64,000 bases of DNA from Macrostomum lignano (taxonomy: Eukaryota), in NCBI GenBank assembly GCA_002269645.1, contig NIVC01001354.1:36147-100146 (forward strand). Reading direction: 5' to 3'. Under the pieces are notes generated by a model. It saw only the letters and a list, made by a program, of their open reading frames with translations. It did not search any database and was not told where the DNA came from. This document shows, in pieces, positions 3,930 to 41,700 of the stretch; position 1 is the first letter of the stretch; the number at the start of each line of letters is the position of its first letter. The translations under genes and the position numbers were made by a program.

Positions 3930-4001
3930 GGCTCAGTGGTCTAGGGGTATGATACTCGCTTAGGGTGCGAGTGGTCCCGGGTTCAAATCCCGGCTGAGCC
4001 C
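3930..4001 (+). tRNA. tRNA-Pro (anticodon AGG)
   Basis: GGCTCAG/CTGAGCC acceptor stem, A-box TGGTCTAGGGG, anticodon arm CTCGC-TTAGGGT-GCGAG, B-box GGTTCAAATCC; a Pol III T-run follows at 4006-4011. Confidence 0.96.
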
Positions 4002-4956: not shown

Positions 4957-5274
4957 TCAGGCGTGCTGCTTCACTCGCCTCACAATCCCGTCGTAGTCGG
5001 CGCCCTTGAGCTCGTCGACCTCCTTGCCGTCCTTGTAGAACTTGAACGTCGGCATGCATTCGATGCCGGCGGCCGACGCCGCGTCAGCATTCTCGTCGAC
5101 GTCGACCTTGGCGAACAAGACGCTGGGCGTGTCGGTGGCGAGCTGCTCGAACTTCGGGGCGATCATGCGGCAGGGGCCGCACCAGCTGGCGGTGAAGTCA
5201 ATCACCACCAGCTTGCCCTGCGAACCGGTCAGCAGGTTGTCGAAGTCGGCTCTCGTTTTCAGAAAATTCACCAT
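4957..5274 (-). CDS. trx: Thioredoxin, 105 aa, intronless CDS
   Basis: MVNFLKT...VVIDFTASWCGPCRMIAPKFEQL...KVDVDE...IECMPTFKFYKDG; canonical WCGPC active site. ATG at 5274 chosen over the upstream non-conserved extension. Confidence 0.95.
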   Translation of the reverse strand: MVNFLKTRADFDNLLTGSQGKLVVIDFTASWCGPCRMIAPKFEQLATDTPSVLFAKVDVDENADAASAAGIECMPTFKFYKDGKEVDELKGADYDGIVRRVKQHA

Positions 5275-6519: not shown

Positions 6520-9899
<3,380 letters not shown>

Positions 9900-10689
9900 G
9901 GCCTTCTTCGACTCGGCTGTGGACTGGGCGATCTGTGCAGAGGTCCCACCGGTCTCGAGCTGGCGCAGTGGGGGAGACCCGAGAGGCTTTTTGTACCGCG
10001 GCTGACGGCTCAAACTCTCGAGGAGAGCCGCTTCTCTTCAGAAGCTCTTCGGAATTCCTTCTGGGGGGAAAATCCTCACCCACGCGCCCACCCCTGCCAT
10101 GCAGGGACTCCTAGAATTAGCACCGGTGGACTCGAAGACCGGCAAAGATAGTAAGTAAACCAGATCTGAAGTGGAGCTGAATAAATTCCCCTGATATAAT
10201 GTAATGTAATTTAAGATGGCAGATATCTTCTGTCAGATAGAATTGGAAAAATCTTATTTTAATCCAAAATAGTTGAATTTTAGGATCCCTTGTTGTTTAT
10301 CCCGGCTTCCAGTCCACAGGCACTTAGAAGTCCCTGCACCCCCCCCCCCTACGAAAAGGAAGCACGAAGCGGTTCCGATCACCCAGTGCTGATCGATATC
10401 TCGAATGCAGTTTCAGCAGCTGCTTTTTCTCCCCTGGCCTGGCAACCTACGCTGCCTACTCTCGCGTGTGTACGCGGCAGTGCGAGTGCGCTGAGCAGTC
10501 TGAGTTTATGCAATTGTTGCTTCCGCGCTTGCTTGTTCTGCTATAGCCTATAGGTCTGCTATATCTGCAATCCGCAATGACCAAGCCATTGCGCTTGGAG
10601 CTGTATTGTGAGAATGCTTATTCATATTAATTGTACGCGCAGGTCACAAGCATTTGCCTTCATGGTGGATGCGATATCCAAGTCTGAGC

Positions 10690-18500: not shown

Positions 18501-21500
18501 AGCGGCCCCGCCGCCAGCTTTTAGGCTACCAAACAGCAGCGACTTGATGTTGGCTTCAACTTCTCGAGCGTCCAACTGGCGATTTGGCGCAGCTGACTGA
18601 GCTGCAGGCTGCTGGGGCTGCTGCTGAGGCTGAGGCAGAAGAGGCTGAGGAGGCTGGGGCTGTTGCTGAGGCTGAGGTTTGTTCTGCTGACCGATGCGCA
18701 GATCCTTCAGCAGCATCTGCTGCAGTTGCACAACATCAGCGCTTGGCGCCGGCTTCTTAGCTGGCGCAGAAGCCGGTTTCGGCGCCGGAGCGGCAGCGGC
18801 GGTTGCCGGAACCTGGGCAGTCGGCGGCCTCATTGGTGGGGGAGCGGCGTCGCCAGAGTCGGCGCTGAGCCACTTCGACATGCGGGAGGGTGCGGCAACA
18901 ACTGGCTGCTCGTCGGCCTCCGCCAGCACCGGCATCAGGAGGTCGGACAGGTCAAAATCCAGCGGTGGGGGGAAAGCAGAGTCGGCTGAGGCCGACTTCT
19001 CAGCTTTCGACGCTGGCTGGGAGGGCGGTGGCGGCGGCGGCGGCGGCGCTGGCGCCTGCGATTTAACAGCTGTTGAAGCTGCCGGAGGCTCCTTCGCCAC
19101 TGATTTGGCCGTCTCCGCGGACTTCGCCGAAGTTGTTGCCGTTGTCGCTGCCGACGAGGCGGTTGCTGCAGCCGCGGCCGGGGCCGCTGACTCGGCTGGC
19201 TCAGGCTTGGCCGCCGGAGCCGCGGGCTGCGGGCGCGGGGCTCGCCTCGGCGCCGACTCCTCGGGCAGGCCGGTGAGCTCCAGCTTCTCGAGCTTATCCA
19301 GCGGGCCCTCATCAAACCAAGCAGGGGTTTCGCTGTCGTTATAGTAGGAGCCGCCGCCGCCGCGCTGTACCGACTGCTGCTGCTGGGGCACGATCTCCCG
19401 AGGCCGTTGGCTTCGCTCCCACTGCCCGGCGCTGGCGGGGAAGCGCGCCGGCCGCTCGATACGGCGGCTCGGCTTGCCTGAAGCTGACGCCGACGCCGCT
19501 GCTGCCGCTGCCGCTGCCGCTGCTGTCGAAGCCGCAGCCGTAGCAGCGGCATTGGCTGCGGACGTTGCCGACGCCGTTTCCGACATCGGCGTCGGGGTGG
19601 AAGCCGCCGAGTGGTCGGAGTCGCCGCGTTCGCGACTACCATCGGCCTCAGCAGCAGTCTTGGCACGGTGAGGATTGCAACCCAGTCCCCAGGTGCGCTT
19701 CTGCGGACCCAGCACGATGCCGTCGTCCTTGCCGCGGTCTGTAGCGGTGAAGTTGCCAATTTTTACCTCTTACTTTAGTTATTCTACTTCTTATGTTTAA
19801 GATCCTTTAGCGCCCCTCGCTACTTTCCGGTCCTTCAGCGCCCCCACTACCTTCAGAGCTTCAGCGCCCCCCCCCCCCCCAATACCTTCAGAGCTTCAGC
19901 GCACCCCCCCAATACCTCCAGAGCTTCAGCGCACCCCCCCCCCAATACCTCCAGAGCTTTAGCGCACCCACTACCTTCCGTTCCTTCAGCGCCCCAACAA
20001 CCTTCTGGTCCTTCAGCGCCCCAACAACCTTCTGGTCCTTCAGCGCCCCCACAACCTCCTCGTCCTTCAGCGCCCCCACTACCTTCTGGTCCTTCAGCGC
20101 CCCCCCCCACTACCTTCTGGTCCTTCAGCACCCCCACTACCTTCTGGTCCTTCAGCGCCCCCACTACCTTCTGGTCCTTCAGCGCCCCCCACTACCTTCT
20201 GGTCCTTCAGCGCCCCCACTACCTTCTGGTCCTTTAGCGCCCCCCCCACTACCTTCTGATCCTTCAGCGCCCCCACAACCTTCTGGTCCTTCAGCGCCCC
20301 AACAACCTTCTGGTCCTTCAGCGCCCCCACAACCTCCTCGTCCTTCAGCGCCCCCACTACCTTCTGGTCCTTCAGCGCCCCCCCCACTACCTTCTGGTCC
20401 TTCAGCACCCCCACTACCTTCTGGTCCTTCAGCGCCCCCACTACCTTCTGGTCCTTCAGCGCCCCCCCCCACTACCTTCTGGTCCTTCAGCGCCCCCACT
20501 ACCTTCTGGTCCTTTAGCGCCCCCCCACTACCTTCTGATCCTTCAGCGCCCCACAACCTTCTGGTCCTTCAGCGCCCCCCCTACCTTTTGGTCCTTCAGC
20601 GCCCCCCCCCCACTACCTTCTGGTCCTTCAGCGCCCCCACTACCTTCTGGTCCTTCAGCGCCCCAACAACCTTCTGGTCCTTCAGCGCCCCCACTACCTT
20701 CTGGTCCTTCAGCGCCCCCACTACCTTCTGGTCCTTCAGCGCCCCCACTACCTTCTGGTCCTTCAGCGCCCCCACTACCTTCTGGTCCTTCAGCGCCCCA
20801 ACAACCTTCTGGTCCTTCAGCGCCCCCCCCCCACTACCTTCTGATCCTTCAGCGCCCCCACAACCTTCTGGTCCTTCAGCGCCCCCACTACCTTCTGGTC
20901 CTTCAGCGCCCCCCCACTACCTTCTGGTCCTTCAGCGCCCCCACTACCTTCTGGTCCTTCAGCGCCCCAACAACCTTCTGGTCCTTCAGCGCCCCCACTA
21001 CCTTCTGGTCCTTCAGCGCCCCCACTACCTTCTGGTCCTTCAGCGCCCCCACTACCTTCTGGTCCTTCAGCGCCCCCACTACCTTCTGGTCCTTCAGCGC
21101 CCCCACTACCTTCTGGTCCTTCAGCGCCCCAACAACCTTCTGGTCCTTTAGCGCCCCCACAACCTTCTGGTCCTTCAGCGCCCCCACTACCTTCTGGTCC
21201 TTCAGCGCCCCCCCCCCCACTACCTTCTGGTCCTTCAGCGCCCCCACTACCTTCTGGTCCTTCAGCGCCCCCACTACCTTCTGGTCCTTCAGCGCCCCCC
21301 CACTACCTTCTGGTCCTTCAGCGCCCCCCACTACCTTCTGGTCCTTCAGCGCCCCCCACTACCTTCTGGTCCTTCAGCGCCCCCCCACTACCTTTTGGTC
21401 CTTCAGCGCCCCCCCCACTACCTTCTCGTCCTTCAGCGCCCCCACTACCTTCTGGTCCTTCAGCGCCCCCCCACTACCTTCTGGTCCTTCAGCACCCCCA

Positions 21501-23329
21501 CTACCTTCTGGTCCTTCAGCGCCCCCACTACCTTCTGGTCCTTCAGCGCCCCCCCCCACTACCTTCTGGTCCTTCAGCGCCCCCACTACCTTCTGGTCCT
21601 TCAGCGCCCCCCACTACCTTCTGTTCCTTCAGCGCCCCCACTACCTTCTTGTCCTTCAGCGCCCCCCCACTACCTTTTGGTCCTTCAGCGCCCCCCCCAC
21701 TACCTTCTGGTCCTTCAGCGCCCCCCACTACCTTCTGGCCTTCAGCGCCCCCACTACCTTCTGGTCCTTCAGCGCCCCCACAACCTTCTCGTCCTTCAGC
21801 GCCCCCCCACTACCTTCTGGTCCTTCAGCGCCCCCACTATCTTCTGGTCCTTCAGCGTCCCCCCACTACCTTCTGGTCCTTCAGCGCCCCCCACTACCTT
21901 CTGGTCCTTCAGCGCCCCCCCCACTACCTTCTGGTCCTTCAGCGCCCCCCACTACCTTCTGGTCCTTCAGCGCCCCCCCAACTACCTTCTGGTCCTTCAG
22001 CGCCCCCACTACCTTCTGGTCCTTCAGCGCCCCCACTACCTTCTGGTCCTTCAGCGCCCCCACAACCTTCTGGTCCTTCAGCGCCCCCCACTACCTTCTG
22101 GTCATTCAGCGCCCCCACTACCTTCTGGTCCTTCAGCGCCCCCCCCCACTACCTTCTGATCCTTCAGCGCCCCCACTACCTTCTCGTCCTTCAGCGCCCC
22201 CACTACCTTCTGGTCCTTCAGCGCCCCCCCACTACCTTCTGGTCCTTCAGCGCCCCCCAACTACCTTCTGGTCCTTCAGCGCCCCCACTACCTTCTGGTC
22301 CTTCAGCGCCCCCACTACCTTCTGGTCCTTCAGCGCCCCCACAACCTTCTGGTCTTTCAGCGCCCCCCACTACCTTCTGGTCCTTCAGCGCCCCCACTAC
22401 TTTCTGGTCCTTCAGCGCCCCCACTACCTGGTCCTTCAGCGCCCCTCCCCCTACCTTCTGGTCCTTCAGCGCCCCCACTAACTTTAGAACTTCAGCGCTC
22501 GCGCTATCCTCCAGACTTTCAGCGCTCTACCTTCCAGCTACTTACCGCCTTTGATCATCTTGGACCTGGTGGTCGTATCGCTGCCTTTCTTGTCCCCGTC
22601 AAAAAGCTTGACAGGATCCCACAGGCCGCCGTCGCCAATGAAGGCCCTGTTGAGCTCCCGAGGCCACAGCTTGGACAGATTCGCCACCTGCAGCTTCATC
22701 AGTTGCTCGCGAGAGTATTGCCTTCGCTTTTGCGGCTGCTGAACTTGCTTCTGCTGCTGCTGCGTTTGCTTCTGCTGTGGCTGTTGCTTTTGCTGCTGCT
22801 GTTGCAGCTGCTTGGGCTGCTGCTGTGATTGCTGCTTCTGCTGAGGCTTCTGTTGCTGCTGGTGTTTGTTCGTTGGCTTATTAGTTTGTTGCTGTTGCTG
22901 CGATTGCTTAGGCGGCTGTTGCTGCTGAGGCTGCTTTGGCTGCTGCGCCTGTTGCTGCTGTGTCTGCTTCTGCACAGGCTGCTGCTTTGGCTGCTGCTGC
23001 GGAACCGGCTGCTGTTGCTGCTGCAGCTGTCCAGCTGGTCCGCCAGCGGCCGCAGAGCCGGCAGTGGCTTCCATCCTCCGTTTGTGGCCGGCGCGGGTGC
23101 CCCTGCGCACCTTGCTGCTGGCCGCGCCAGCCCCGGCGGCGATGTTGTTGTTGTTGCTCCCGCCGCCGTTCCCGGCGCCGCCTGCAGTGGCCACGCCGGC
23201 GGCAGCCGCCGCTGGCTGTTCAACGGCCTGCGCGACCGGCTTGCCAGCCGCATTGGCGCCGCTGCTCTCCTTCTGGACTTGCTGCTGCCCTGCCCGGTTC
23301 ATTCTGCGAAGAAGGTGGTGAGACTTCAT
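15557..23329 (-). CDS. EIF4ENIF1: eIF4E transporter (4E-T / EIF4ENIF1-like), Q/A/P-rich, ~1093 aa, 4 exons
   Basis: complement join(23329-22546, 19738-17862, 16701-16513, 15988-15557) = 3282 nt in frame. Motifs: canonical eIF4E-binding YSREQLM followed by [16 protein letters not shown]; [15 protein letters not shown]; Cup-homology-like [22 protein letters not shown]; SRMSKWLS; TLEEIE. The start codon (23329 vs 23302) and the last-exon boundary are less certain. Confidence 0.85.
16120..16445. repeat. 9/13-bp (GGGAGTGAC / AGGAGGGAGTGAC) minisatellite in 4E-T intron 3
   Basis: Direct repeats. Confidence 0.9.
17150..17852. repeat. 35-bp minisatellite (ATCAAAGGATTGGAATGCTGATAGTGGCGGCACAC)n in 4E-T intron 2
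   Basis: About 20 units, starting ~10 nt after the donor at 17861. Confidence 0.93.
19805..22535. repeat. ~27-bp minisatellite (CCTTCTGGTCCTTCAGCGCCCCCACTA)n with variable C-run, 4E-T intron 1
   Basis: About 100 units filling intron 22545-19739. Confidence 0.95.
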
Positions 23330-23373
23330 TAGCTTGATTAGCAAACACCACTAAATGCAAGCTAAACTATGAA

Positions 23374-23626
23374 CACACATGCGCAACAACCGACTGGCTG
23401 GCGAGGGGCCCAGCCAAGGTAAGTCGCAAAAATGCCCACAAGAAAAATATTAACGCAGTACTAATTAGATGACGAGGCATTTATCCCTAATAAGACACTC
23501 GAGTTACTCCTGCCATTTACCCAAAAGCATTAATTCTTGCTTTAGGGTTTTTTTCGCAGGTAAGTCGCATTTTTGGTCAAAAAGTAAGTCACATGGCCAG
23601 TGTAAATCAGAGGTTGCGCATGTATG
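23374..23626. mobile_element. hAT-type MITE copy A (253 bp), 14-bp TIR CA(C/T)ACATGCGCAAC
   Basis: TIRs at 23374-23387 and 23613-23626; the interior is the reverse complement homologue of 33766-34063; the TSD is degenerate (ACTATGAA / ACTTGTAT). Confidence 0.75.
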
Positions 23627-24756
23627 ACTTGTATAAAACCACAGGTGCATTAATTCCTTCATCAATTTTTGATCTGTCTCCTTCACTGTACTGATATAAA
23701 GCAGTTAATTTTTGAATTTTGTAACACTGATAGAAAAATTAGTCTATAAAAATGCCTAACAGTCTCAAGGGTTAAAAACTTTTGCCATTTACCCCATTGG
23801 CCTTTTTCTGCAATGCTTGATAGCCTGCAATAGTTATATCATTCCAGGTAACAAGAATATTATAGATTTTAAAAATCAATTTATTAATATATAATTTATG
23901 ACATTATTTTTTAATTTTTAAAGATAAAATTTTGTGGCTACTAAATCAGTTTTCAATGATGTTATGTGACTTTCTAAGCTTGAGAGTTTTTTTGAGATTT
24001 TGACTTTTCAAGCTTGTGATAATGGATAACTTTTCAACAATGTGACTTTTTGAGCTTGTGATGTGACTCCCTTTTTGTTTGCTAATAGATGAATTATATG
24101 AGTTTTTGAATTAAGTTTGAATTGCATTTGCATTTTGAGTTAGTAGCTATCTAAGAGAAGATACAAAAAGTGCAATAATCCTTTTCTTATTTAGTGCAAT
24201 AATCCTTTTATTTAGACCCTAATAAATCCTTGAATAAAAGCTTTAATAAAATATTTTATTATTTACTAAGACTTGAACCCAGATCATTGCATTAGTAGGC
24301 TTTAGTTTAGTTTGTTTGCATCTAAGCTTGCTTTAATCAATTTTATTAAAAATTAATTGTACAATATACCACTTATAATTCAACCTTCATACTAAATCAG
24401 TTAAAGTAAAAGGCAATTAGTATCAATCCAAATTAAAATCAATAATAGAATTATGCAATCTAAATTAGGTCTCTTGCTATGCTTCCACACTGTATTTTTA
24501 ACATTAATTTAATTCATGTTAGACTAGAGTTATAATTTATTTGATGATACAATCTTTATTAGAATCAGAATTTAGTCAAGCAATTTTTTCTCTCTAGCAT
24601 TCTTTTACTGCATTTCATATTGAAAAGTCTACTTGACCTTTGCAGCTAATGTATTGATTTCCCGACAGACATTCAGACAGACATTCAGAAATTGTTCATT
24701 AAATGTTTAACAAAATTGTCTATTTATTACACAAGATACTGTGAATTTATAGAAAC

Positions 24757-27700
24757 TTTTACGCATGTCTCTGCTTTAAAAAGACACCTCAGACACACAC
24801 AAAGACGCTTCACAAGCTGAGATATTCCCTAGCAACTGTTGTTACGACGTTTCCCAATATACCAAATACTGTATATAGTAGTTTTTTGAGAAGCCGCTAC
24901 ATCGTCCCACTTTGGTCTTTCTGCATGAAATTTGCACAGCTGTTTTACGCATGTCTCTGCTTTAAAAAGACACCTCAGACACACACAAAGACGCTTCACA
25001 AGCTGAGATATTCCCTAGCAACTGTTGTTACGACGTTTCCCAATATACCGAATACTGTATATAGTAGTTTTTTGAGAAGCCGCTACATCGTCCCACTTTG
25101 ATTTTTCTGCATAAAATTTGCACAGCTGTTTTACGCATGTCTCTGCTTTAAAAAGACACCTCAGACACACACAAAGACGCTTCACAAGCTGAGATATTCC
25201 CTAGCAACTGTTGTTACGACGTTTCCCAATATACCGAATACTGTATATAGTAGTTTTTTGAGAAGCCGCTACATCGTCCCACTTTGGTCTTTCTGCATGA
25301 AATTTGCACAGCTGTTTTACGCATGTCTCTGCTTTAAAAAGACACCTCAGACACACACAAAGACGCTTCACAAGCTGAGATATTCCCTAGCAACTGTTGT
25401 TACGACGTTTCCCAATATACCGAATACTGTATATAGTAGTTTTTTGAGAAGCCGCTACATTGTCCCACTTTGGTCTTTCTGCATGAAATTTGCACAGCTG
25501 TTTTACGCATGTCTCTGCTTTAAAAAGACACCTCAGACACACACAAAGACGCTTCACAAGCTGAGATATTCCCTAGCAACTGTTGTTACGACGTTTCCCA
25601 ATATACCGAATACTGTATATAGTAGTTTTTTGAGAAGCCGCTACATCGTCCCACTTTGATCTTTCTGCATGAAATTTGCACAGCTGTTTTACGCATGTCT
25701 CTGCTTTAAAAAGACACATCAGACACACACAAAGACGCTTCACAAGCTGAGATATTCCCTAGCAACTGTTGTTACGACGTTTCCCAATATACCAAATACT
25801 GTATATAGTAGTTTTTTGAGAAGCCGCTACATTGTCCCACTTTGGTCTTTCTGCATGAAATTTGCACAGCTGTTTTACGCATGTCTCTGCTTTAAAAAGA
25901 CACCTCAGACACACACAAAGACGCTTCACAAGCTGAGATATTCCCTAGCAACTGTTGTTACGACGTTTCCCAATATACCGAATACTGTATATAGTAGTTT
26001 TTTGAGAAGCCGCTACATCGTCCCACTTTGATCTTTCTGCATGAAATTTGCACAGCTGTTTTACGCATGTCTCTGCTTTAAAAAGACACCTCAGACACAC
26101 ACAAAGACGCTTCACAAGCTGAGATATTCCCTAGCAACTGTTGTTACGACGTTTCCCAATATACCGAATACTGTATATAGTAGTTTTTTGAGAAGCCACT
26201 ACATCGTCCCACTTTGATCTTTCTGCATGAAATTTGCACAGCTGTTTTACGCATGTCTCTGCTTTAAAAAGACACCTCAGACACACACAAAGACGCTTCA
26301 CAAGCTGAGATATTCCCTAGCAACTGTTGTTACGACGTTTCCCAATATACCGAATACTGTATATAGTAGTTTTTTGAGAAGCCGCTACATCGTCCCACTT
26401 TGATCTTTCTGCATGAAATTTGCACAGCTGTTTTACGCATGTCTCTGCTTTAAAAAGACACCTCAGACACACACAAAGACGCTTCACAAGCTGAGATATT
26501 CCCTAGCAACTGTTGTTACGACGTTTCCCAATATACCGAATACTGTATATAGTAGTTTTTTGAGAAGCTGCTACATCGTCCCACTTTGGTCTTTCTGCAT
26601 GAAATTTGCACAGCTGTTTTACGCATGTCTCTGCTTTAAAAAGACACCTCAGACACACACAAAGACGCTTCACAAGCTGAGATATTCCCTAGCAACTGTT
26701 GTTACGACGTTTCCCAATATACCGAATACTGTATATAGTAGTTTTTTGAGAAGCTGCTACATCGTCCCACTTTGGTCTTTCTGCATGAAATTTGCACAGC
26801 TGTTTTACGCATGTCTCTGCTTTAAAAAGACACCTCAGACACACACAAAGACGCTTCACAAGCTGAGATATTCCCTAGCAACTGTTGTTACGATGTTTCC
26901 CAATATACCGAATACTGTATATAGTAGTTTTTTGAGAAGCTGCTACATCGTCCCACTTTGATCTTTCTGCATGAAATTTGCACAGCTGTTTTACGCATGT
27001 CTCTGCTTTAAAAAGACACCTCAGACACACACAAAGACGCTTCACAAGCTGAGATATTCCCTAGCAACTGTTGTTACGACGTTTCCCAATATACCGAATA
27101 CTGTATATAGTAGTTTTTTGAGAAGCTGCTACATCGTCCCACTTTGGTCTTTCTGCATGAAATTTGCACAGCTGTTTTACGCATGTCTCTGCTTTAAAAA
27201 GACACCTCAGACACACACAAAGACGCTTCACAAGCTGAGATATTCCCTAGCAACTGTTGTTACGACGTTTCCCAATATACCGAATACTGTATATAGTAGT
27301 TTTTTGAGAAGCCGCTACATCGTCCCACTTTGATCTTTCTGCATGAAATTTGCACAGCTGTTTTACGCATGTCTCTGCTTTAAAAAGACACCTCAGACAC
27401 ACACAAAGACGCTTCACAAGCTGAGATATTCCCTAGCAACTGTTGTTACGACGTTTCCCAATATACCGAATACTGTATATAGTAGTTTTTTGAGAAGCTG
27501 CTACATCGTCCCACTTTGGTCTTTCTGCATGAAATTTGCACAGCTGTTTTACGCATGTCTCTGCTTTAAAAAGACACCTCAGACACACACAAAGACGCTT
27601 CACAAGCTGAGATATTCCCTAGCAACTGTTGTTACGACGTTTCCCAATATACCGAATACTGTATATAGTAGTTTTTTGAGAAGCTGCTACATCGTCCCAC

Positions 27701-30417
27701 TTTGGTCTTTCTGCATGAAATTTGCACAGCTGTTTTACGCATGTCTCTGCTTTAAAAAGACACCTCAGACACACACAAAGACGCTTCACAAGCTGAGATA
27801 TTCCCTAGCAACTGTTGTTACGACGTTTCCCAATATACCAAATACTGTATATAGTAGTTTTTTGAGAAGCCGCTACATTGTCCCACTTTGGTCTTTCTGC
27901 ATAAAATTTGCACAGCTGTTTTACGCATGTCTCTGCTTTAAAAAGACACCTCAGACACACACAAAGACGCTTCACAAGCTGAGATATTCCCTAGCAACTG
28001 TTGTTACGACGTTTCCCAATATACCGAATACTGTATATAGTAGTTTTTTGAGAAGCTGCTACATCGTCCCACTTTGGTCTTTCTGCATGAAATTTGCACA
28101 GCTGTTTTACGCATGTCTCTGCTTTAAAAAGACACCTCAGACACACACAAAGACGCTTCACAAGCTGAGATATTCCCTAGCAACTGTTGTTACGACGTTT
28201 CCCAATATACCAAATACTGTATATAGTAGTTTTTTGAGAAGCCGCTACATTGTCCCACTTTGGTCTTTCTGCATAAAATTTGCACAGCTGTTTTACGCAT
28301 GTCTCTGCTTTAAAAAGACACCTCAGACACACACAAAGACGCTTCACAAGCTGAGATATTCCCTAGCAACTGTTGTTACGACGTTTCCCAATATACCGAA
28401 TACTGTATATAGTAGTTTTTTGAGAAGCCGCTACATCGTCCCACTTTGGTCTTTCTGCATGAAATTTGCACAGCTGTTTTACGCATGTCTCTGCTTTAAA
28501 AAGACACCTCAGACACACACAAAGACGCTTCACAAGCTGAGATATTCCCTAGCAACTGTTGTTACGACGTTTCCCAATATACCGAATACTGTATATAGTA
28601 GTTTTTTGAGAAGCCGCTACATCGTCCCACTTTGATCTTTCTGCATGAAATTTGCACAGCTGTTTTACGCATGTCTCTGCTTTAAAAAGACACCTCAGAC
28701 ACACACAAAGACGCTTCACAAGCTGAGATATTCCCTAGCAACTGTTGTTACGACGTTTCCCAATATACCGAATACTGTATATAGTAGTTTTTTGAGAAGC
28801 CGCTACATCGTCCCACTTTGATCTTTCTGCATGAAATTTGCACAGCTGTTTTACGCATGTCTCTGCTTTAAAAAGACACCTCAGACACACACAAAGACGC
28901 TTCACAAGCTGAGATATTCCCTAGCAACTGTTGTTACGACGTTTCCCAATATACCGAATACTGTATATAGTAGTTTTTTGAGAAGCCGCTACATCGTCCC
29001 ACTTTGGTCTTTCTGCATAAAATTTGCACAGCTGTTTTACGCATGTCTCTGCTTTAAAAAGACACCTCAGACACACACAAAGACGCTTCACAAGCTGAGA
29101 TATTCCCTAGCAACTGTTGTTACGACGTTTCCCAATATACCGAATACTGTATATAGTAGTTTTTTGAGAAGCCGCTACATCGTCCCACTTTGATTTTTCT
29201 GCATAAAATTTGCACAGCTGTTTTACGCATGTCTCTGCTTTAAAAAGACACCTCAGACACACACAAAGACGCTTCACAAGCTGAGATATTCCCTAGCAAC
29301 TGTTGTTACGATGTTTCCCAATATACCGAATACTGTATATAGTAGTTTTTTGAGAAGCCGCTACATCGTCCCACTTTGATCTTTCTGCATGAAATTTGCA
29401 CAGCTGTTTTACGCATGTCTCTGCTTTAAAAAGACACATCAGACACACACAAAGACGCTTCACAAGCTGAGATATTCCCTAGCAACTGTTGTTACGACGT
29501 TTCCCAATATACCAAATACTGTATATAGTAGTTTTTTGAGAAGCCGCTACATTGTCCCACTTTGGTCTTTCTGCATGAAATTTGCACAGCTGTTTTACGC
29601 ATGTCTCTGCTTTAAAAAGACACCTCAGACACACACAAAGACGCTTCACAAGCTGAGATATTCCCTAGCAACTGTTGTTACGACGTTTCCCAATATACCA
29701 AATACTGTATATAGTAGTTTTTTGAGAAGCCGCTACATCGTCCCACTTTGATTTTTCTGCATAAAATTTGCACAGCTGTTTTACGCATGTCTCTGCTTTA
29801 AAAAGACACCTCAGACACACACAAAGACGCTTCACAAGCTGAGATATTCCCTAGCAACTGTTGTTACGACGTTTCCCAATATACCGAATACTGTATATAG
29901 TAGTTTTTTGAGAAGCCACTACATCGTCCCACTTTGATCTTTCTGCATGAAATTTGCACAGCTGTTTTACGCATGTCTCTGCTTTAAAAAGACACCTCAG
30001 ACACACACAAAGACGCTTCACAAGCTGAGATATTCCCTAGCAACTGTTGTTACGATGTTTCCCAATATACCGAATACTGTATATAGTAGTTTTTTGAGAA
30101 GCCGCTACATCGTCCCACTTTGATCTTTCTGCATGAAATTTGCACAGCTGTTTTACGCATGTCTCTGCTTTAAAAAGACACCTCAGACACACACAAAGAC
30201 GCTTCACAAGCTGAGATATTCCCTAGCAACTGTTGTTACGACGTTTCCCAATATACCAAATACTGTATATAGTAGTTTTTTGAGAAGCCGCTACATTGTC
30301 CCACTTTGGTCTTTCTGCATGAAATTTGCACAGCTGTTTTACGCATGTCTCTGCTTTAAAAAGACACCTCAGACACACACAAAGACGCTTCACAAGCTGA
30401 GATATTCCCTAGCAACG
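24757..30417. repeat. 186-bp satellite, 30 full units plus a partial one (left arm of the foldback element)
   Basis: Marker ACGCATGTCTCTGC at 24761 and 30341 = exactly 30 x 186; units differ by only a few SNPs. Confidence 0.97.
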
Positions 30418-31020
30418 GTTGCCTGAAGGCATGCTCATATCTAACTTGCATTTGGACACCGGCATGGAATGTACGTTATACTTGTATTTGCCTTCTACCG
30501 ATCTGAAGCACTTTACTTTAGGCAGATCTATCAGCAATATTAACACTGTACAGGAGGCAGTTTTTCTTTATGTACATTCGTTGTCATTTTGCCATGTACA
30601 TTACGCAAGAGGCCTAACACAGAATATGCCTGCACCCTGTTTTGGTATATAATCTTTCTCACTAACAAGCTCATTTTGACAATATGGATGAATTGTCTTT
30701 GCTGACTACAATATCTCTATCTTATATTGGCAAGAGTACAAGCACTAGCATATTTTGGTACTTAATTCATCTGACAGTTTTTTTCGGCATGAGGTTGTCA
30801 ATATGCATTTTGGCTTTGTTCCTGGTCACCATCTCAATGAGTTTCCCTACCAAGGAAGAAGTAAGCATTTTTTTGGCTTTGTGATAGACTGACGTCTACG
30901 AATGGCTATATAGGCAAGGACCACTGTAGTGCGAGAAGAAGGACTCGGCACTCACGAACTACGGAAAAATTTTTGAAGGCTGATTTTCCGCAGGCTTCGT
31001 GTCTGACTACCAGTGCGCCA

Positions 31021-32624
31021 TTTTTGTGCAACCACATAAATTTGTGCTTTATTCATGCTTATTGCTCTGCTCATTTTTGATGCATGTTGTGCACGTAATT
31101 ACATGCATACATGTAATTTTTTCTATTAATTTTTTTTCAATAAATGGCTACAAGCACTAGACTTTCAAGATTTTCAAGTACGAGACACCTCGTGCAATAT
31201 GCCATAATTGCCATAAATTAATTGCCATAATTGCTTACTGAGAACCTCTCATCACAATGTATCACAGAAGAAATCAGCCAGCAGAAGTGAGCATGGAGGA
31301 CATCAATCGCTAATAGCACTGTGGAAGTGGAGGAAGTTGCTATCGATAACGAATTGCATTCACCGGAAATAGTCGAAATGTTTGTCATCCGATACCTCTC
31401 CTACTTTCCCTTATGGGCTGCCTGCGTCTGGAACCATGAATTCTTGGAAAGCCGCGTGAAGTCTCCTTTTTCAAATGCTCACATTGAGAGCTAGTTTAAG
31501 AGAATAAAATCCAAATTTCAGCTACCCGTCTCTGTCGCCGAGTTCTCGAAATTAACCGCAAGTTTCTGTCATGAAAGGATAAAGGAGGCGAAATTACTTC
31601 GGCAAGTTGCTCCACCACGATTTTGCCAACGAAAAAGGAAGGCCGCGGCGGAGACAGCTGATGGGGCTGAAGAAAGCTGGGGCAAAAAATGATGCAGATA
31701 CTCAAACAGTAGGCAGACACCACGAACAAAGTCACAGCCTCCCCCCTGTGAGTTTCCAAAATCGCCACTCGACTCTCAGCAACCGCCACGCGACTCTCAG
31801 CAACCGCCACGCGACTCTCAGCAACTGCCACGCGACTCTCAGCAACCGCCATGCGACTCTCAGCAACTGCCACGCGACTCTCAGCAACCGCCCAGCTCAA
31901 AAATTTCGGCTCTACGAGATGTAAGAGGAACGCCAATTTCAGAAGAGCAATTAGCATCACTCAATGGTACGAACTGGCTGGACTATGCGGTAAGAAATTT
32001 GTAGGAAGTGCTTTGCATCATAGCATTACGCTATGTACGTAATTTAATGTGTAGAAGGTATTAAAAATATTATCAGGTTGTGTACGGCTACTTGGCTGCA
32101 ATTGCTAGCGGAGCAGATGGAGTTGCTATGCAGCAGAGCGATTTTCTTTCCTTGCTAGACGGTGGTAGCAAAGGCTCTCAGCACATTGAATCTCTTTGGA
32201 ACTATTTCCTTGGTCGAGCGGTAAGCATAATGTGAAATTTTAACTTTTAATCTGATGTTGGTTTCACCATCAACCATTGCTACGAGTATAGTTGATATCC
32301 ACATGCAGAGGTGGAACAATCCTGCAACAATTCTATAATTCTGAAGAATTAATTATAAAAAATTTTAGACAGTGAAGAAAATTCTGGCTTGCAAGACCTT
32401 TTCTGCATCATTTTAGATTGAATGCCCCTCCTGCCTCTTTTGGTACCACAAAATCTGTTGGAACAGCTGGAAAAGCACGGCAAATGTTTGCTCCGATTGC
32501 GCCAGACTTGATGCATAAAATGCTGACTGTGTTGAATAAAGAAAGGGACAATGCAGTTATCGCGGATCAAGTCGGACGTGATATTTATGGGGTGTTTTAT
32601 GTTTCGTTGCACGAAATGTTTTGA
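31021..32624 (+). pseudogene. Decayed MULE/NOF-like transposase C-terminus fused to a Ulp1 (C48)-like protease domain
   Basis: One frame reads CSAHF (31063-31077), then from 31321 YLSYFPLWAAC..SNAHIES*FKRIK..EESWGKK*..(DSQQPPR)x6..ISEEQLASLNGTNWLDYA|GTAAGA; intron 31990-32076; exon 32077-32220 VVYGYLAAIA..|GTAAGC. Frameshifted relics NH(C/W)..IVDI, QFYNS and QVGRDIYGVF follow. Confidence 0.62.
31762..31892. repeat. 21-bp repeat x6 (CGCCACGCGACTCTCAGCAAC) encoding the in-frame DSQQPPR linker
   Basis: Direct repeats within the decayed transposase frame. Confidence 0.9.
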
Positions 32625-32724
32625 TGCTTATTTTCTGTAGTTTGATTCTCAGTTGCTGACGGGATTACCCCATCCTGAGTCGATAACATTAATTCTGTTC
32701 GATTTTACTAATGTGCACTGTGCA

Positions 32725-33196
32725 CTAATTTCATGCAGAAAGACCAAAGTGGGACGATGTAGCGGCTTCTCAAAAAACTACTATATACAGTATTCGGTAT
32801 ATTGGGAAACGTCGTAACAACAGTTGCTAGGGAATATCTCAGCTTGTGAAGCGTCTTTGTGTGTGTCTGAGGTGTCTTTTTAAAGCAGAGACATGCGTAA
32901 AACAGCTGTGCAAATTTTATGCAGAAAAATCAAAGTGGGACGATGTAGCGGCTTCTCAAAAAACTACTATATACAGTATTCGGTATATTGGGAAACGTCG
33001 TAACAACAGTTGCTAGGGAATATCTCAGCTTGTGAAGCGTCTTTGTGTGTGTCTGAGGTGTCTTTTTAAAGCAGAGACATGCGTAAAAGTTTCTATAAAT
33101 TCACAGTATCTTGCGTAATAAATAGACAATTTTGTTAAACATTTAATGAACAATTTCTGAATGTCTGTCTGAATGTCTGTCGGGAAATCAATACAT
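32725..33196. repeat. Right inverted arm of the foldback element (~2 x 186-bp units plus outer arm)
   Basis: Reverse complement of 24649-25120; GACATGCGT markers are 186 nt apart. Confidence 0.95.
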
Positions 33197-33765
33197 TTGC
33201 AGCTAGCCACTTTGGGTTTGCAAAAATGCATATTTTTAGACTTTTAAAATTAAACTCTACTAAAGACTTTAGCCTAGTATTGAGCAATTTCTTGGGACTT
33301 AGGCAAGACATAGGCCCCTATTCCTATATATATGGCATTATGGGAAAAAATTATTGAATATAGAATAGTCAAGTTTGAAGAAAAGCAGTTAAGCAATTTT
33401 TTCTAAAATCAATCATACACATGCATAGGCCTATATACACTTATAGCCATAGGCCCTATTTATAAACCATTTTAGTACATGGTCATGATTTATGGATGCT
33501 ACTTCCAACATTAGTTGTCAAAAATATTAGGAAATGATTTAGTTAGGGGCCTATCTTATCACCATCTAAGCATCTTTTTATACACTAAATTTAACGTTGT
33601 TTACTTAATATTTGTTAGACAAAATGATTGTAGGCCCAGAGTCCAGAGTCCAGACCAGACCATTTCATTTTTATCATTTTTCTATTAGTATTAGTATTAG
33701 GGCTTAGAATCTTAGATTATGCCTATAGAAACCAGAAACACTAGGCTAGCTAGGCCTATGAAGCT

Positions 33766-34063
33766 CATACATGCGCAACCTCTGAAATTCGGTCGGCCAT
33801 GCGACTTAGTTTTAACAAAAATGCGACGTAGTTTTTGGCCAAAAATGCGACTTACATGTAAAAAAACCCTAAAGCAAAATTAACGCAACTTTGGGTAAAC
33901 GGCAGGAGTAACTATGACTGTCTTATTAAGCCAAAATGCCTCGTCAGCTACTTAGTACTACTACTTAATTATTTTTTCGGGTGGGCATTTTTGCGACTTC
34001 CTTGGTTGGCCGCCAAATCGGTCGGCCGGATCGGCCGACTCGGCCGACTGTTGCGCATGTATG
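33766..34063. mobile_element. hAT-type MITE copy B (298 bp)
   Basis: Perfect 14-bp TIRs CATACATGCGCAAC / GTTGCGCATGTATG and an exact 8-bp TSD ATGAAGCT (33758-33765, 34064-34071); no coding capacity. Confidence 0.88.
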
Positions 34064-35932
34064 ATGAAGCTTAGCATAACAAAGAATTAAGCCAAGGTTG
34101 ACGACAGGCGAATGCAACTATACCACCATAAAAATGCGACCAATGCCAATAATGACGATGGCTAGCCTATAGCCTATAGGCAAAACTCAAAACTGGCAAA
34201 AAATTGGTCACAAAAAATAATGCGCTTAATATAAAGAGCTGTTAAGTGGATATCCTAACCTAGCTGCTAGCCTTAAACATCAATATTTAGTGCCAAAATA
34301 TAGCCCTATATAAACTGTTTATCAGTTTATGGTGTTCAGTCTCCGGCCGTACGTCAGTCAGTCATGAATCTATGAGTCTCGAATGTCGAATTCGCCATGA
34401 CCGTGTCTCCAAAATATACAATAAAAATGAGTCAAATTTTTATTCATTGCAGCGATGTTTTTAATTACTAAAAAATTTTTTATTACCATTTTTACACAAC
34501 TTCCTCATGAGAGTCTCTTTTACTTTGGTTTTACTTTATATTATCTAGTTTCTTCGTTAAAACTAACGTATCATATTTGAAATATTTGTACTAATCTGGC
34601 CTTTAACATAGCTAAAAATAGTTTACCATTTTTCGTCATTTCTCAAAATTTCAATGAAGCTGTTTTCCTTCATGCTGTAACTATTTTTTTCTCTATATCG
34701 TTGCTTTCGTATTCGCGCTTTCTCAATTGTTGCATTCAATTTTGTGATAGTATGTGCACACTGCGAAGTAGAATTAAACTTACATTGTACTTTTACAATG
34801 TAAGTCACCCTTGACCTTGCTACCTATTGTTAATGTAACTATATATTTATGTCTATAGCAACAGGTGCATGTGGCAAAAGCAAACTGTGTAATAGGAATG
34901 TCCTGAGATACACAATATGAGGAGGTATTATTAGACCGGAGCCTTCTGAGGAGATGTTGAGATCGAAACTCAGAGAGGGTTCAAGTGCTGTTTACCATGC
35001 AAATTGTTCAAAAACAGCGCTTCAGCGCTTCACCATACTCGATCTGAAACACTCGTATTTGTGTACGTTTCTCTACCGATCGCTGCTTGCATGCGTTACC
35101 GCTTCTGATGACCCGCGCTCCGAAGCTTCGCCCCAGCGCTACCCTGCGCTGCATGGCGCCGTGAGATGCTGCTGGGCCACTTCCTACGGACCCTGGACCG
35201 CGGAGCGCCGTCCCTCTGGCCCTGGCCCTGCTGCACCGGCCGACCGCGAGCAATTGCGCCGCGGCCACGCCCGCACTGCCACTCTGACTGACAGCTCATC
35301 GCAGACTTTCAGGCGCGCTTGCGCTGACCCTCAGCTGCTGCTGCTGCCGGCCCCTCCCGCCCGTTCTGCGAGCACGTGCGCGCAAAGGGGTCGTCTCCCC
35401 TTTGCGTCCTAATACATATATCTATATATATATAATATATGTGCTGTTTATCTATATATACACTGTATATCCGTATCCTTTTTTCACCATCTTCACCAGT
35501 TTTATATATGAAACATTATATATGTAGCGATTTCTTCGTTAAGACACTTGTAAAGTTTTCATAAGGCAACATGCGCTCTGCAGCGTATGAGTAAATAGCG
35601 CCCACTAGCGAGATGGCCTACTGGCGAGTACAGCAAAGAATAATTCAATGGAAATAGACAGCTTAAGATAAATGCTTGACTAATGTTTTAAAGGGCGGGT
35701 TGTCCACTGCAAACAATACAAAACAGAACGAACAATCCCAAGTTTGCACTTCAATTTGGGGGCTACATGTATAAAGAGAGTTAATTTCGAATCTCACTAT
35801 GAGAAATATTTTATAATTGCACAAGCTTAAAAACGTTCAAAAGAGTAATGAACCAGGAACCAGGAACTTCTGCAACATTTAACATCCGTTCGCTATGCAT
35901 TACGAGCGCATATAATTGACTTATTAAACTCT

Positions 35933-38786: not shown

Positions 38787-41700
38787 ATGAGCTCCAACAC
38801 CAGCAACCTGAGCTGCGGCAACATCACTGAGTACACACCCGCCATCGGAGTCCAGGAGGTGGTGCACATCAGCCTGCAGAGCCTCATCTTCTGCTTCGGC
38901 CTGGCCGGCAACCTGATTCTCCTCTCCATCATTGTGAGCCAGAGAAACCTGCGCACCACGCCCAACCTGTTCATTAGCAACCTGGCGGTGGCCGACTGCA
39001 TCTACCTGCTGCTCTTCGTGCCCTGCGACATCGCCAGCAACTTCGGCTTGCAGCTGCCCACCGTGTTCTGCAAGACTCTTTACTTCTGCCGCATTCTCAC
39101 GGTCGGGGTGTCCGTCTACACCCTGCTGGCTATGGCGATTGACAGGTGAGCCGCGCTCCCAGCAGCAATGGCGACCCCCATAGCGCTTGTTATCGATTTG
39201 AAGTTGATTTTGTGTCAGCGAGGTCTGAGCAGGGAGTATTGAGTATCGAACCTGTTTGAAGATTCAATCAGTTATGCCGAATCAGATTCAACACTTAGCT
39301 AGTCAACGCGGGAGCTGTCAATCATGACACTGATAATCTTGACAGCCACAGACTGAGGCAAATTCAAGCCACTGCAATATCGCCAGCTTCTTCAATTCAA
39401 GGCAAGACTTGAGAAACCCGACACCAGTCTAACTCAAAGGTGTTAACAAATGACAAAGGCGGCGAAACGGGCAAATGCCCTCAAAGACTAGCGTACATGT
39501 AGAGTAGCTTTGAGAAAGCCTTTGCTTTTGAAATGTTTGGCAATCCCGGTTCCATGGCAACGGCAGCCAGTTTTGCCTAAACATCGGCAGACTAAAACAT
39601 AGTCGGCACCTGTAGTGTGAGCATCAGCGAATTCCGGCTAGCGGGCCACATGCCCTCTGGTCCGGAACTTCACAATAGCAATTCGGCCCGCTCAAGGTTT
39701 GTGTCTTCTCAGCTCTCTTTTCATTTTTCTCCCCTCTCATTTCTCATCTCCTCTCTCTCTCTGGCCCGCATTCATGCGCTTAGATTCTATATCTGGTCCT
39801 TAAATTAAAGATGTTTGCCGACCTTTGTCATAGAGCGACTGTAGGCGGATACGAAGGCCAGAATGAAAGCATGTCGAGAACCAACACTTGCCCGGTTTGA
39901 GTCCCCTTACCAGGTTTTCAGGACGCGGTCCCTCGCTCAATACGCGGATATTTTTCAATCCACTTCGACTTCCCCCTTCCTCCATTCCGTGGGACGCGGC
40001 TCCCAGGCATTGCCCAAACAGGAAAAGTCTTGCATTCCACGAGAGGCGGCGACGAGGGCGTCTTTCTGTGGAAAAAGTCCCATGCTCAGGGGCTGCACTG
40101 TTTGCTGTAGACAGCGGCGAGGCCGAGGCCGCGCGGACTTCCATGCTGCCTGCTTCAAGTGTCAGCTTATCGTGTTATAATTTATATGGGCTGCAGGCAA
40201 ACACTCGAAACCCGCTGGGAGCTTTTTGCACTGGGAGATCTGGAGATCTGGAGTGCGCGGACACTCCACAGCTGATCAGCTCATCAGGAGGATAGAATTA
40301 TCAAAGAAAGTAATTCCACTGCTCAAAAAAAGATAGCTCGTACAGAAGTTTATCTTCAAAATCAATACTGAGTCATTTAGCCATCCCACGGAAGGTCCAG
40401 AGGGGGAAACCGCGTCTGATTCACAGAGTGTGCACTGCCTGACAATGAGAGAAAGTCAGGGCTGCTGCAGTGTGCACCCTGTGTGAGAGCGCGTGCTCAG
40501 GGAACAGCCGCCTCGATGCTTGCACTCAGTCCCGCAGTCCCTCACTTGCAGGAGGCACTACACAGAATAACCCCCGCGACTCTGTGAAACCCTGCAAGTT
40601 GAAGAAGTAGTCTCTAGGCTGCATTAGTCAGCTGTGCTCACAAACTGTTGGCTTCATTTTAATGCAAAATCGTCTCAAAATAAATTTGTCAAACAAGATC
40701 AATTGTTGTCGGGGGCTGCCTAGTTTTCTTCTTAGCAAAGCCGGGCCAATGAGTGCACAGCAACTCGCCTCTCTGCAAGCGACAACCTTGAGTAGCAGGG
40801 AGAGGCCCACCCAGCAACTCAGGTGTCAGGCGGGCATCCGCTCTGCGCGTACAGACGCTGCACTCGCGTGGAAAACTCTGATCTTTTGAAAAACATGTTT
40901 TTTCAAACCCATCGGTTGTAAACACGGATGAAGGGCACGGCAGCTCAGATTGATTGATCAACAAATGCTGATTGACTCCGCCGGCTTGATTGATAAGCTT
41001 GGCGCGTGGTGACTAGAGAGTAAACAGACTCTGCCAGATTTAGAAGTGCATTTCACCTTGACAGCAGCCCCCCCGATGCCGGAAAATATCTGTTCCATAA
41101 TCCGCGCCTCATCCGAGACTAGAGAAATTGGAATGAAGACAGCAGAGCCGGCAACGGGGGAAGCCCTGAGGGGAGAGCGAAAATAATTGCAGTCACAAAA
41201 TCCCCGCCGAGCGGAGCTGTCAGCAACAAGACGAAAAAAACAACAAAAAAGCAGAGACTGATGCTCAACATCTCGAGGAACAGCTGTACTGCATCGCAGA
41301 AGGATCTGCCAATGGGATGCGGAGTCACGGATTCTGGATGGGATTGAAGTGTCTCGCAGATAACTGCAGCTATGCGGAGCTGAGACTGACGGATTCAAAT
41401 TAGTCTACTCAGACAGCGTTGAGTGAGCTTTGTAATGCTAATTGGGCCATGACGGTAGAGTGGCTCTTTGTATTGCTGAGCTGCAATTGCCGAGTGAAGA
41501 GCTTTTGAATTCGGGTTAAAAGAATTGGATTCTGAATGGATCGAAAATTTGAATGCAGCTGGCGCCAATTTGAATACAGCTGGCGCGAATTTGAATACAG
41601 CTAGCGCCAATTTGAATACAGCTGGTGCAGATTTAAATACAGCTAGCGCCAATTTGAATACAGCTGGCGCAGATTTAAATACAGCTAGCGCCAATTTGAA

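Follow-up and report, generated by a model that had tools for sequence, protein, structure and literature searches.

Rehavkus elements are placed inside the MULE superfamily, as a sister group or outgroup of Mutator, and have been described as foldback transposons that duplicate 9 bp of their target site (target-site duplications, TSDs), contain satellite-like repeats in subterminal position and feature a PHD finger as well as a C-terminal minisatellite (PMC6446971; bioRxiv 10.1101/2024.12.02.626372). The PHD finger and the C-terminal minisatellite distinguish their transposases from those of other MULEs, and the reported elements range from 5 to 18.5 kb in length, with TIRs of 26–412 bp (PMC6446971). 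The subterminal tandem repeats have a 164-bp unit that is present in up to 50 monomers, such that the termini can exceed 11 kb. In 2019, the known elements amounted to a handful of Repbase entries, which came from insects and one leech. The group is one of the least studied among DNA transposons, and Pfam has no model of its transposase.

We present here an additional example of this previously described element type, the foldback Rehavkus transposon, found in a 64-kb stretch of DNA (the window). The features of the element are collected in Table 1. Taken together, they very probably record one cut-and-paste insertion event, that of a non-autonomous Rehavkus-group element of the MULE superfamily with an internal deletion and foldback architecture.

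Table 1. Features of the foldback element, with positions numbered along the window
Feature	Positions	Strand	Remarks
Left TSD, TTGCAGCTA	24640-24648	.	9/9 identity with right TSD
Transposon body	24649-33196		8,548 bp, between perfect 9-bp direct repeats
Left terminal (outer) domain	24649-24756	+	108 bp, inverted relative to right domain
12-bp direct repeat GACAGACATTCA	24664-24689		2.2 copies, in left terminal domain
Left inner arm	24757-30421	+	30.5 tandem 186-bp units, 98% matches
Loop between arms	30422-32726		2,305 bp, gene relic on + strand
Non-coding spacer of middle domain	30422-31290	.	GC 0.39, stops in every frame, no profile match
Relic exon 1	31291-31989	+	233 codons; 2 stops (TAG 31492-31494, TGA 31690-31692); GT donor at end
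Rehavkus catalytic C-terminal block	31303-31509	+	W at 31414-31416, catalytic E at 31486-31488
21-bp minisatellite	31763-31892	+	6.2 copies, in frame within relic ORF, PRDSQQP repeats
Relic exon 2	32077-32220	+	48 codons, open, AG acceptor and GT donor
Relic exon 3	32417-32518	+	Half PHD/RING-like finger, then stop TAA
Poly(A) signal AATAAA	32535-32540		17 nt past relic stop
Right inner arm	32727-33088 (array start 32718/32727)	-	~1.95-2.0 units of 186 bp, inverted
Right terminal (outer) domain	33089-33196	-	107/108 complementary to left domain
12-bp repeats, right terminal domain	33156-33181
Right TSD, TTGCAGCTA	33197-33205	.	Identical to left TSD

The group assignment follows from the gene relic in the loop. 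Using an HMM built from six published Rehavkus DDE domains (supplement of PMC6446971), we obtained one match in the six-frame translation of the window, at the position of the catalytic block in Table 1 (HMM positions 240–305, 19.3 bits), with the next-best match in the window at 1.3 bits and a maximum of 2.7 bits over 150 block-shuffled windows. When isolated, the relic scored 27.9 bits on this HMM, compared to −2.0 on a plant MuDR/Jittery HMM, which falls inside the range of 21.6–30.8 bits given by true Rehavkus C-termini in a leave-one-out comparison. Alignment of the relic to the Rehavkus profile by hhalign gave a probability of 93.7% (E = 1.9e-7). The homology takes the form of a block of 50–66 residues at ~24% identity, in which the covered stretch retains all five invariant columns (N, W, E, F and K), the catalytic E among them. 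HMM positions 1–239 found no match in any frame of the window; both catalytic D residues are absent from the element, and the N-terminal three quarters or more (~4/5) of the DDE domain is gone. A first-pass annotation, made from the sequence alone, had described a 2.3-kb loop with transposase relics and had taken the element to be non-autonomous, and we find both statements borne out, the former by this match and the latter because most of the transposase domain has been deleted, both catalytic D residues with it.

Other searches returned little. Pfam gave nothing significant on the relic pieces or on the six frames of the loop, which is to be expected, as Pfam barely detects genuine Rehavkus transposases: of the six Rehavkus domains themselves, one matches MULE (E = 0.026). 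A library of 5.8 billion proteins gave no hits for either the 125-aa relic or the 190-aa spliced concept, an exhaustive phmmer search of 1.84 billion representative proteins gave 0 matches, and a PDB sequence search returned noise only (E > 0.2). An AlphaFold single-sequence model of the relic (pLDDT 58) was of insufficient quality for a fold search. Standard annotation and searches of billions of sequences are thus blind here, as the transposase is unmodeled in Pfam, whereas a six-sequence profile detects the relic. Two other readings of short motifs were abandoned: a Merlin/IS1595-like interpretation of 'IESxFKRIK' was replaced by the Rehavkus match, and a likeness of 'LNGTNWLDYAV' to Ulp1 proteases was unsupported by every search. 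At the nucleotide level, Rfam had no match inside the element, metagenome and viral contigs contained 0 exact matches to the terminus or the 186-bp unit, and four sequence strings occurred in 0 papers in a full-text literature search.

The relic has the structure of a decayed gene. Exon 1 carries 2 stops where 10.7 would be expected (P ~6e-4), the introns are canonical GT-AG with a GC content of 0.30–0.32 (compared to 0.47–0.50 in the exons), and the splice junctions are in phase 0. The minisatellite lies between the end of the DDE domain and the finger exon, in the C-terminal coding part. The finger pattern of exon 3, C-x2-C-x4-H-x2-C-x10-C-x2-C, corresponds to the latter half of the PHD/RING pattern and scores 14.1 bits against Pfam PHD (E = 0.048), under the cut-off of 24; the first Cys pair is absent from all frames upstream.

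These features bear on the possibility that, in an otherwise genuine Rehavkus element, exons 2–3 (32077-32518), and perhaps also the minisatellite, come from host gene fragments captured in Pack-MULE fashion. Kept introns are what a genomic capture would leave, exons 2–3 have no detectable homologue in the protein libraries or PDB searched, the first Cys pair is missing from the PHD-like finger, and MULEs are known to take up host fragments (PMC6446971; PMC8277862). However, a finger and a minisatellite are hallmark traits of Rehavkus, found here in the expected order and in one reading direction, and the phase-0 junctions and poly(A) signal likewise argue for one transposase gene. In addition, the GC3 of the relic (0.44–0.56) is far under that of host exons in the window (0.69–0.89), which disfavors a freshly captured host gene. 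We therefore consider host capture improbable, and take all three exons to be probable remains of a Rehavkus transposase.

The first-pass annotation had also described inner arms of 186-bp tandem units in inverted orientation. These are real, with the unit counts of 30.5 (left) and 2.0 (right) being those of the assembly, on which array length depends. The left inner arm breaks off in mid-unit, at about position 84, and the arms as a whole are strongly unequal (5.77 kb on the left vs 0.47 kb on the right), an imbalance that went unmentioned in that annotation. The description of the element as complete can thus be kept for its two ends, but not for its transposase domain or for its arms. The units are ordered variants rather than identical copies; the variants are mostly transitions, with 5 of 9 at CpG, and their local clustering was not significant (814 of 5000 permutations). 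We dropped the idea that the unit derives from the outer domain, as the two share only an 18-bp match (83%, E = 0.59).

A 5.7-kb array of 98%-identical units beside an inverted copy is hard to assemble, and it could be argued that the right arm is mis-joined or the array length wrong, such that the "complete element" is partly a product of the assembler. We regard this as very unlikely: a perfect 9-bp duplication is found exactly at both ends, which a mis-join would not create, the flanks are unique and AT-rich, the unit variants in the array are ordered, and the inner junction of the right arm is unique sequence that continues the 3′ UTR of the relic.

The identity of the 9 bases outside both inverted ends, proposed in the first-pass annotation as a perfect TSD, would arise by chance with a probability of ~1.2e-5 given the composition of the flanks (1.5e-4 for 7 bases), and a third occurrence of TTGCAGCTA, at 36006, is consistent with chance. 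The outer arms, previously put at ~110 bp with about one mismatch, were measured at 108 bp, with an A/G difference at offset 83 as the single mismatch. The terminal 20-mer occurs at both ends of the element only (shuffle expectation 0.01), and neither the outer arm, the 186-bp unit nor the loop has further copies elsewhere within the 64-kb window. The 12-bp repeats of the terminal domains are candidate transposase-binding sites. We note that TSDs of 7 bp (TGCAGCT, as the first-pass annotation had pointed out) or 8 bp are also formally possible readings, since the base beside each end may be counted as part of the TIR or of the duplication; the 7-bp reading requires one base to be shifted into each TIR, whereas the 9-bp reading involves no terminal mismatch.

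This latitude is relevant to the alternative that a foldback-shaped element of another superfamily, Galileo-like P (7-bp TSD), hAT or Merlin (8–9 bp), carries the relic as unrelated cargo. Foldback shape is polyphyletic, with Galileo also having repetitive, unequal TIRs and 7-bp TSDs (PMC4079207, PMC3573991), and Pfam shows no transposase domain. Against this, the relic match is specific to the Rehavkus profile and as strong as in members of the group, Pfam misses most true Rehavkus domains, as seen above, and the mismatch-free reading of the ends is the 9-bp one. No THAP or P transposase signal was found in a six-frame Pfam scan of the loop. Assignment to another superfamily is thus highly improbable in our assessment. 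The chance that there is no transposon here at all, but a local satellite array that acquired an inverted duplication through replication or repair (palindrome formation), is negligible: although 37% of the window consists of tandem arrays and repeat instability is common, the TSD coincides precisely with the TIR ends (P ~1e-5), the arms enclose a transposase relic, and the 186-bp unit differs from the other arrays of the window (units of 4–92 bp).

The Rehavkus-group element lies next to a gene that the first-pass annotation had named as 4E-T, with the insertion ~1.3 kb upstream. The identity of the gene is supported by a Pfam EIF4E-T match of 29.6 bits (cut-off 28.5), and the distance agrees with that from the upper end of the first 4E-T coding ORF (23344). 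A homology search with 4E-T gave no hits, and neither a unit ORF nor the thioredoxin had an exact match on record. An 83% inverted match between 23410-23594 and 33821-34009, which raised the possibility of an older, larger enclosing element, was found to be two separate MITEs, each with its own TIRs.

On the reading preferred here, that of a Rehavkus-group insertion, a plausible history can be outlined. Rehavkus transposase supplied by an intact copy elsewhere would have bound to the terminal domains, perhaps via their 12-bp GACAGACATTCA repeats and possibly also via the 186-bp units, and cut the target with a 9-bp stagger, the TSD arising by gap repair. Before insertion, the target would read ...GAAAAGTCTACTTGACCTTTGCAGCTAGCCACTTTGGGTTTGC..., with a single TTGCAGCTA. 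The element itself may descend from an autonomous one through a deletion in which four fifths of the transposase gene were lost from the 5′ side, and one deletion breakpoint was probably in the left array, as this array ends in mid-unit. Unequal exchange or replication slippage in the arrays, such as has been reported for Rehavkus, Tetris and Galileo, could have produced the asymmetry of 30.5 to 2 units, and the two relic stops and the array variants would then reflect decay after inactivation.

Several implications follow. The copy is well bounded, having its TSD, its two termini and a transposase fragment that is diagnostic, and so offers a handle on the family and on its autonomous partner in the genome; it may also widen the host range of Rehavkus. 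For genome annotation, a 5.7-kb 'satellite' beside the 4E-T promoter region is part of a mobile element. With 2 copies of the 186-bp unit on one side and 30 on the other, the element illustrates how a transposon can give rise to satellite DNA, a path described for Tribolium and Drosophila virilis. A bolder reading is that a still-active Rehavkus lineage exists in an animal that is neither insect nor annelid, the two groups to which Rehavkus was supposed to be confined, and that the one-sided 30-unit array is satellite DNA at birth in a transposon arm, 1.3 kb upstream of the conserved translational repressor gene 4E-T. We put this forward tentatively, considering it rather unlikely.

Comparison with known systems places the element as follows. 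Galileo (P superfamily, Drosophila) resembles it in having long TIRs and ~210-bp internal repeats whose count is unequal between the arms, but differs in its 7-bp TSD and its THAP/P-type transposase, the relic here being Rehavkus-like (PMC3573991). Drosophila FB and Phantom-type MULEs, and Tm1 of Meloidogyne, share foldback arms of tandem motifs, 9-bp TSDs and membership of the MULE superfamily, but their repeats are short (10–31 bp, and 14 bp in Tm1), and the FB/Phantom-type transposase combines FLYWCH and Pfam MULE domains (PMC3169594). Neither domain was found in the present loop in a six-frame scan at E ≤ 1, which is weak evidence, as the N-terminal part is deleted. The view of the first-pass annotation that this is a foldback-type element of the Mutator superfamily with a decayed transposase is upheld by the 108-bp inverted ends, the 186-bp arrays and the Rehavkus-like relic; its choice of FB/FB-NOF and Phantom as the nearest type is not, as the surviving block fits Rehavkus (27.9 bits). 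Tetris of Drosophila virilis is similar in its unique flanking domain, ~220-bp tandem repeats and middle domain, in being non-autonomous, in its TSD of 8–10 bp, and in having TIR repeats that seed satellite arrays (PMC4079207). However, Tetris lacks a coding relic, and its assignment to Mutator was made by TSD length alone (PMC4079207), whereas here a transposase fragment assigns the group.

The greatest similarity is to Rehavkus-1_TC and Rehavkus-3_TC of Tribolium castaneum (Repbase), a likeness of described features and of a protein block. These elements likewise have a 9-bp TSD, at lengths of 9.5 and 18.5 kb (8.5 kb here), and tandem satellite-like units in inverted termini, of 164 bp (5–8 copies, up to 50) as opposed to 186 bp. 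The C-terminal block of Rehavkus-1_TC reads ...KKYLPILPLWS...RFSNAPVENWFCQVK, compared to ...IRYLSYFPLWA...PFSNAHIES*FKRIK in the relic. The C-terminal minisatellite is shared as well, and so in part is the PHD finger, of which only half is present here; unlike the Tribolium elements, moreover, the present copy has no transposase sequence before HMM position ~240, and has arms of 30.5 and 2 units. With its 9-bp TSD, long inverted ends with subterminal repeats, DDE C-terminal block and C-terminal minisatellite, the element thus finds its closest known kind in Rehavkus, rather than FB-NOF or Phantom, an assignment supported at the sequence level by direct scoring of the relic against plant MULEs and, for Phantom, by domain descriptions.

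The 8,548 bp at 24649–33196 are one element, with inverted ends, a 9-bp target duplication and a fragment of a Rehavkus-type transposase (Rehavkus being a group of DNA transposons within the MULE superfamily). Its target-site duplication (TSD), TTGCAGCTA, lies at 24640–24648 and 33197–33205, with 9/9 positions identical (P ~1.2e-5 by chance at two fixed sites, as estimated from the base frequencies of the AT-rich flanking DNA), and both terminal domains (the outer 108 bp of each inverted repeat) directly adjoin the TSD copies on the inner side. The terminal domain at 24649–24756 matches the reverse complement of 33089–33196 at 107 of 108 positions, such that the identical flanks and the inverted outer arms with about one mismatch described in the first-pass annotation are both borne out. 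The terminal 20-mer is found only at the element's two ends (0.01 matches expected from shuffles), and both terminal domains contain a 12-bp direct repeat, GACAGACATTCA, present in 2.2 copies at 16–41 bp from the tip. We found no other sequence similar to the terminal domain, the 186-bp unit of the arms or the loop within the 64-kb window, and no match to the element's sequences in metagenome and viral scans or in a full-text literature scan.

Past the first 870 bp of the loop, the plus strand resembles the 3′ portion of a gene. The stops in exon 1 (TAG at 31492 and TGA at 31690) compare with 10.7 expected (P ~6e-4), and AATAAA lies 17 nt past the TAA stop of exon 3. The latter exon holds the pattern C-x2-C-x4-H-x2-C-x10-C-x2-C, corresponding to the C-terminal half of a PHD/RING finger, and matches Pfam PHD at E=0.048, under the Pfam cut-off. 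The GC3 of this relic (0.44–0.56) is much lower than the 0.69–0.89 of the window's host exons, which counts against a freshly captured host gene.

Features of the element and of the surrounding window
Feature	Position	Strand	Remarks
Left array, 186-bp units	24757-30421		Head-to-tail, 30.5 copies, 98% matches
Loop	30422-32726		2,305 bp; first 870 bp non-coding
Relic exon 1	31291-31989	+	233 codons, 2 stops, GT donor at end
Minisatellite, 21-bp unit	31763-31892		6.2 copies, in frame in exon 1
Relic intron 1	Between exons 1 and 2		87 bp, GC 0.30
Relic exon 2	32077-32220	+	48 codons, open
Relic intron 2	Between exons 2 and 3		196 bp, GC 0.32
Relic exon 3	32417-32518	+	33 codons, TAA stop
Right array, 186-bp units	32718/32727-33088		Orientation opposite to left, 2.0 copies
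tRNA-Pro, anticodon AGG	3930-4001	+	Rfam 56.5 bits, confirmed by ARAGORN
Thioredoxin gene	4957-5274	-	105 aa, apparently intronless; Pfam Thioredoxin E=4.5e-28
Rhodopsin-family GPCR, first part	38787-39149	+	7tm_1 E=1.5e-16
Rhodopsin-family GPCR, middle part	48150-48584	+	7tm_1 E=2.9e-8

General searches returned no significant match for the relic pieces and all six frames in Pfam, no match for the relic in 5.8 billion proteins (word-indexed, two queries) or 1.84 billion representatives (exhaustive phmmer), and nothing significant among PDB sequences; its single-sequence structure prediction (pLDDT 58) was too poor for use. These negative searches are explained by Pfam being nearly blind to Rehavkus domains, as it detected one of six genuine ones, and that weakly (MULE, E=0.026). 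The literature pointed to Rehavkus, and an HMM made from six Rehavkus DDE domains (supplement of PMC6446971) gave, in a six-frame translation of the whole window, a sole match at 31303–31509 (HMM positions 240–305, 19.3 bits), with a runner-up of 1.3 bits and a maximum of 2.7 bits across 150 block-shuffled windows. Scored by itself, the relic reaches 27.9 bits, inside the leave-one-out range of 21.6–30.8 bits, for which the last 55 residues of every known Rehavkus domain were run against a profile built from the remaining five. A profile made from five plant MuDR/Jittery domains, likewise taken from that supplement, gives the relic −2.0 bits, and hhalign aligns it to Rehavkus with 93.7% probability (E=1.9e-7). 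Within the matched stretch, the relic retains all five residues that are invariant across the six references (N, W, E, F, K), among them the catalytic glutamate (codon 31486–31488) and the F three residues past it, where the plant MULEs have N. The TAG stop aligns with Y, C, W or S in the references, and so lies a single substitution from a Tyr or Trp codon. The DDE domain upstream of HMM position ~240, including the two catalytic aspartates, is absent from every frame of the window. The transposase relics noticed in the loop are borne out, as a Rehavkus-type C-terminal block.

The inner arms do consist of inverted 186-bp tandem units, as had been proposed, and are strongly unequal as assembled (5.77 kb left vs 0.47 kb right), which had gone unmentioned. 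The left array ends mid-unit at about position 84, and the right near the close of its second unit. Of the nine variable array positions, eight show transitions and five fall within CpG, which fits the decay of methylated repeats. Within the left array, unit variants repeat in similar order ~20–22 units apart (units 2/24, 6/26 and 8/28), and units 20 apart differ least on average, which hints at duplication of a ~20-unit block within the array. A frame also runs open through these units (186 = 62 codons), with ORFs of up to 430 aa, closing in those units where G>A at position 159 changes TGG to TGA; an exact-product look-up for one such ORF returned no record, and we consider the frame to be open by chance and liable to mis-annotation by gene callers.

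Cut-and-paste transposition is established for DDE transposons, and MULEs in particular. On this basis, transposase from an intact copy would have bound the element's ends, with the 12-bp subterminal repeats as candidate binding sites, and cut the target with a 9-bp stagger, gap repair then yielding the duplication. The element would be an internal-deletion derivative, with one breakpoint probably within the left array, and unequal exchange or slippage may have produced the unequal arrays. Repeat numbers differ between the two arms of a single Galileo copy (PMC3573991), and widely between copies and species in Tribolium Rehavkus. The near-identical terminal domains and intact TSD are compatible with a fairly recent insertion, without dating it.

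The minus-strand neighbour scores 29.6 bits against Pfam EIF4E-T (cut-off 28.5), supporting its identity as a 4E-T gene, and the upper end of this gene's first coding ORF is ~1.3 kb from the insertion, in agreement with the distance upstream reported initially. A 4E-T query returned no homologues, and an exact look-up of the thioredoxin (4957–5274) gave no record. We note that two MITE copies (23373–23627 and 33765–34064; ~260–300 bp each, 83% alike over ~190 bp), with 15-bp terminal inverted repeats TCATACATGCGCAAC / GTTGCGCATGTATGA, flank the element on either side, mutually inverted; the right copy is bordered on both sides by TGAAGC, a possible 6-bp TSD. We rejected this pair as arms of a larger enclosing element; they are separate elements. 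The window is very rich in minisatellites: tandem arrays with a TRF score of at least 300 occupy 23.9 kb of the 64 kb (37%), of which 17.8 kb lie outside the transposon. Minisatellites (e.g., 612–1318, 1695–2586, 8852–9564, 10689–12956, 19957–22498, 41545–42650 and 46293–48128) have units of 4–92 bp, and a 27 bp × 91 array lies inside the 4E-T-like gene region. The two GPCR ORFs are probably exons of a single gene, separated by a ~9-kb minisatellite-filled intron. Host coding ORFs (GC 0.59–0.70, GC3 0.69–0.89; e.g., 4957–5274, 17814–19715 and 60935–62377) contrast sharply with intergenic and intronic DNA (GC ~0.27–0.39; e.g., 23500–24500), the relic's GC3 being intermediate.

The TSD, the repeat-bearing inverted termini and the transposase fragment uphold the original description as foldback-type, Mutator-like and non-autonomous; the nearest kind is Rehavkus, by the transposase block and shared traits, and not the Foldback/FB-NOF and Phantom-type elements with which it was first compared. 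On the transposase evidence, the element does not fit Galileo, nor, as judged from Pfam scans and the Rehavkus and plant MULE profiles, Phantom/FB. For Rehavkus, Dupeyron et al. 2019 (Table 1; PMC6446971) list a 9-bp TSD, TIRs of 26–400 bp, a "minisatellite in Cterm" and a PHD finger. In Tribolium, these are foldback transposons whose long inverted termini carry tandem repeats in varying number; examples include the 164-bp unit of Rehavkus-1_TC (9.5 kb), arrays of up to 50 monomers and termini of >11 kb. The Rehavkus literature thus already describes such an architecture. The present element, a genuine, well-bounded but defective Rehavkus-type foldback transposon known here from one copy, is a neat case of a seldom-annotated group and of satellite growth within a transposon arm: it shares with Rehavkus the 9-bp TSD, tandem-repeat foldback termini, C-terminal catalytic block and C-terminal minisatellite, while only half of the PHD finger is present and the N-terminal part of the DDE domain is deleted.
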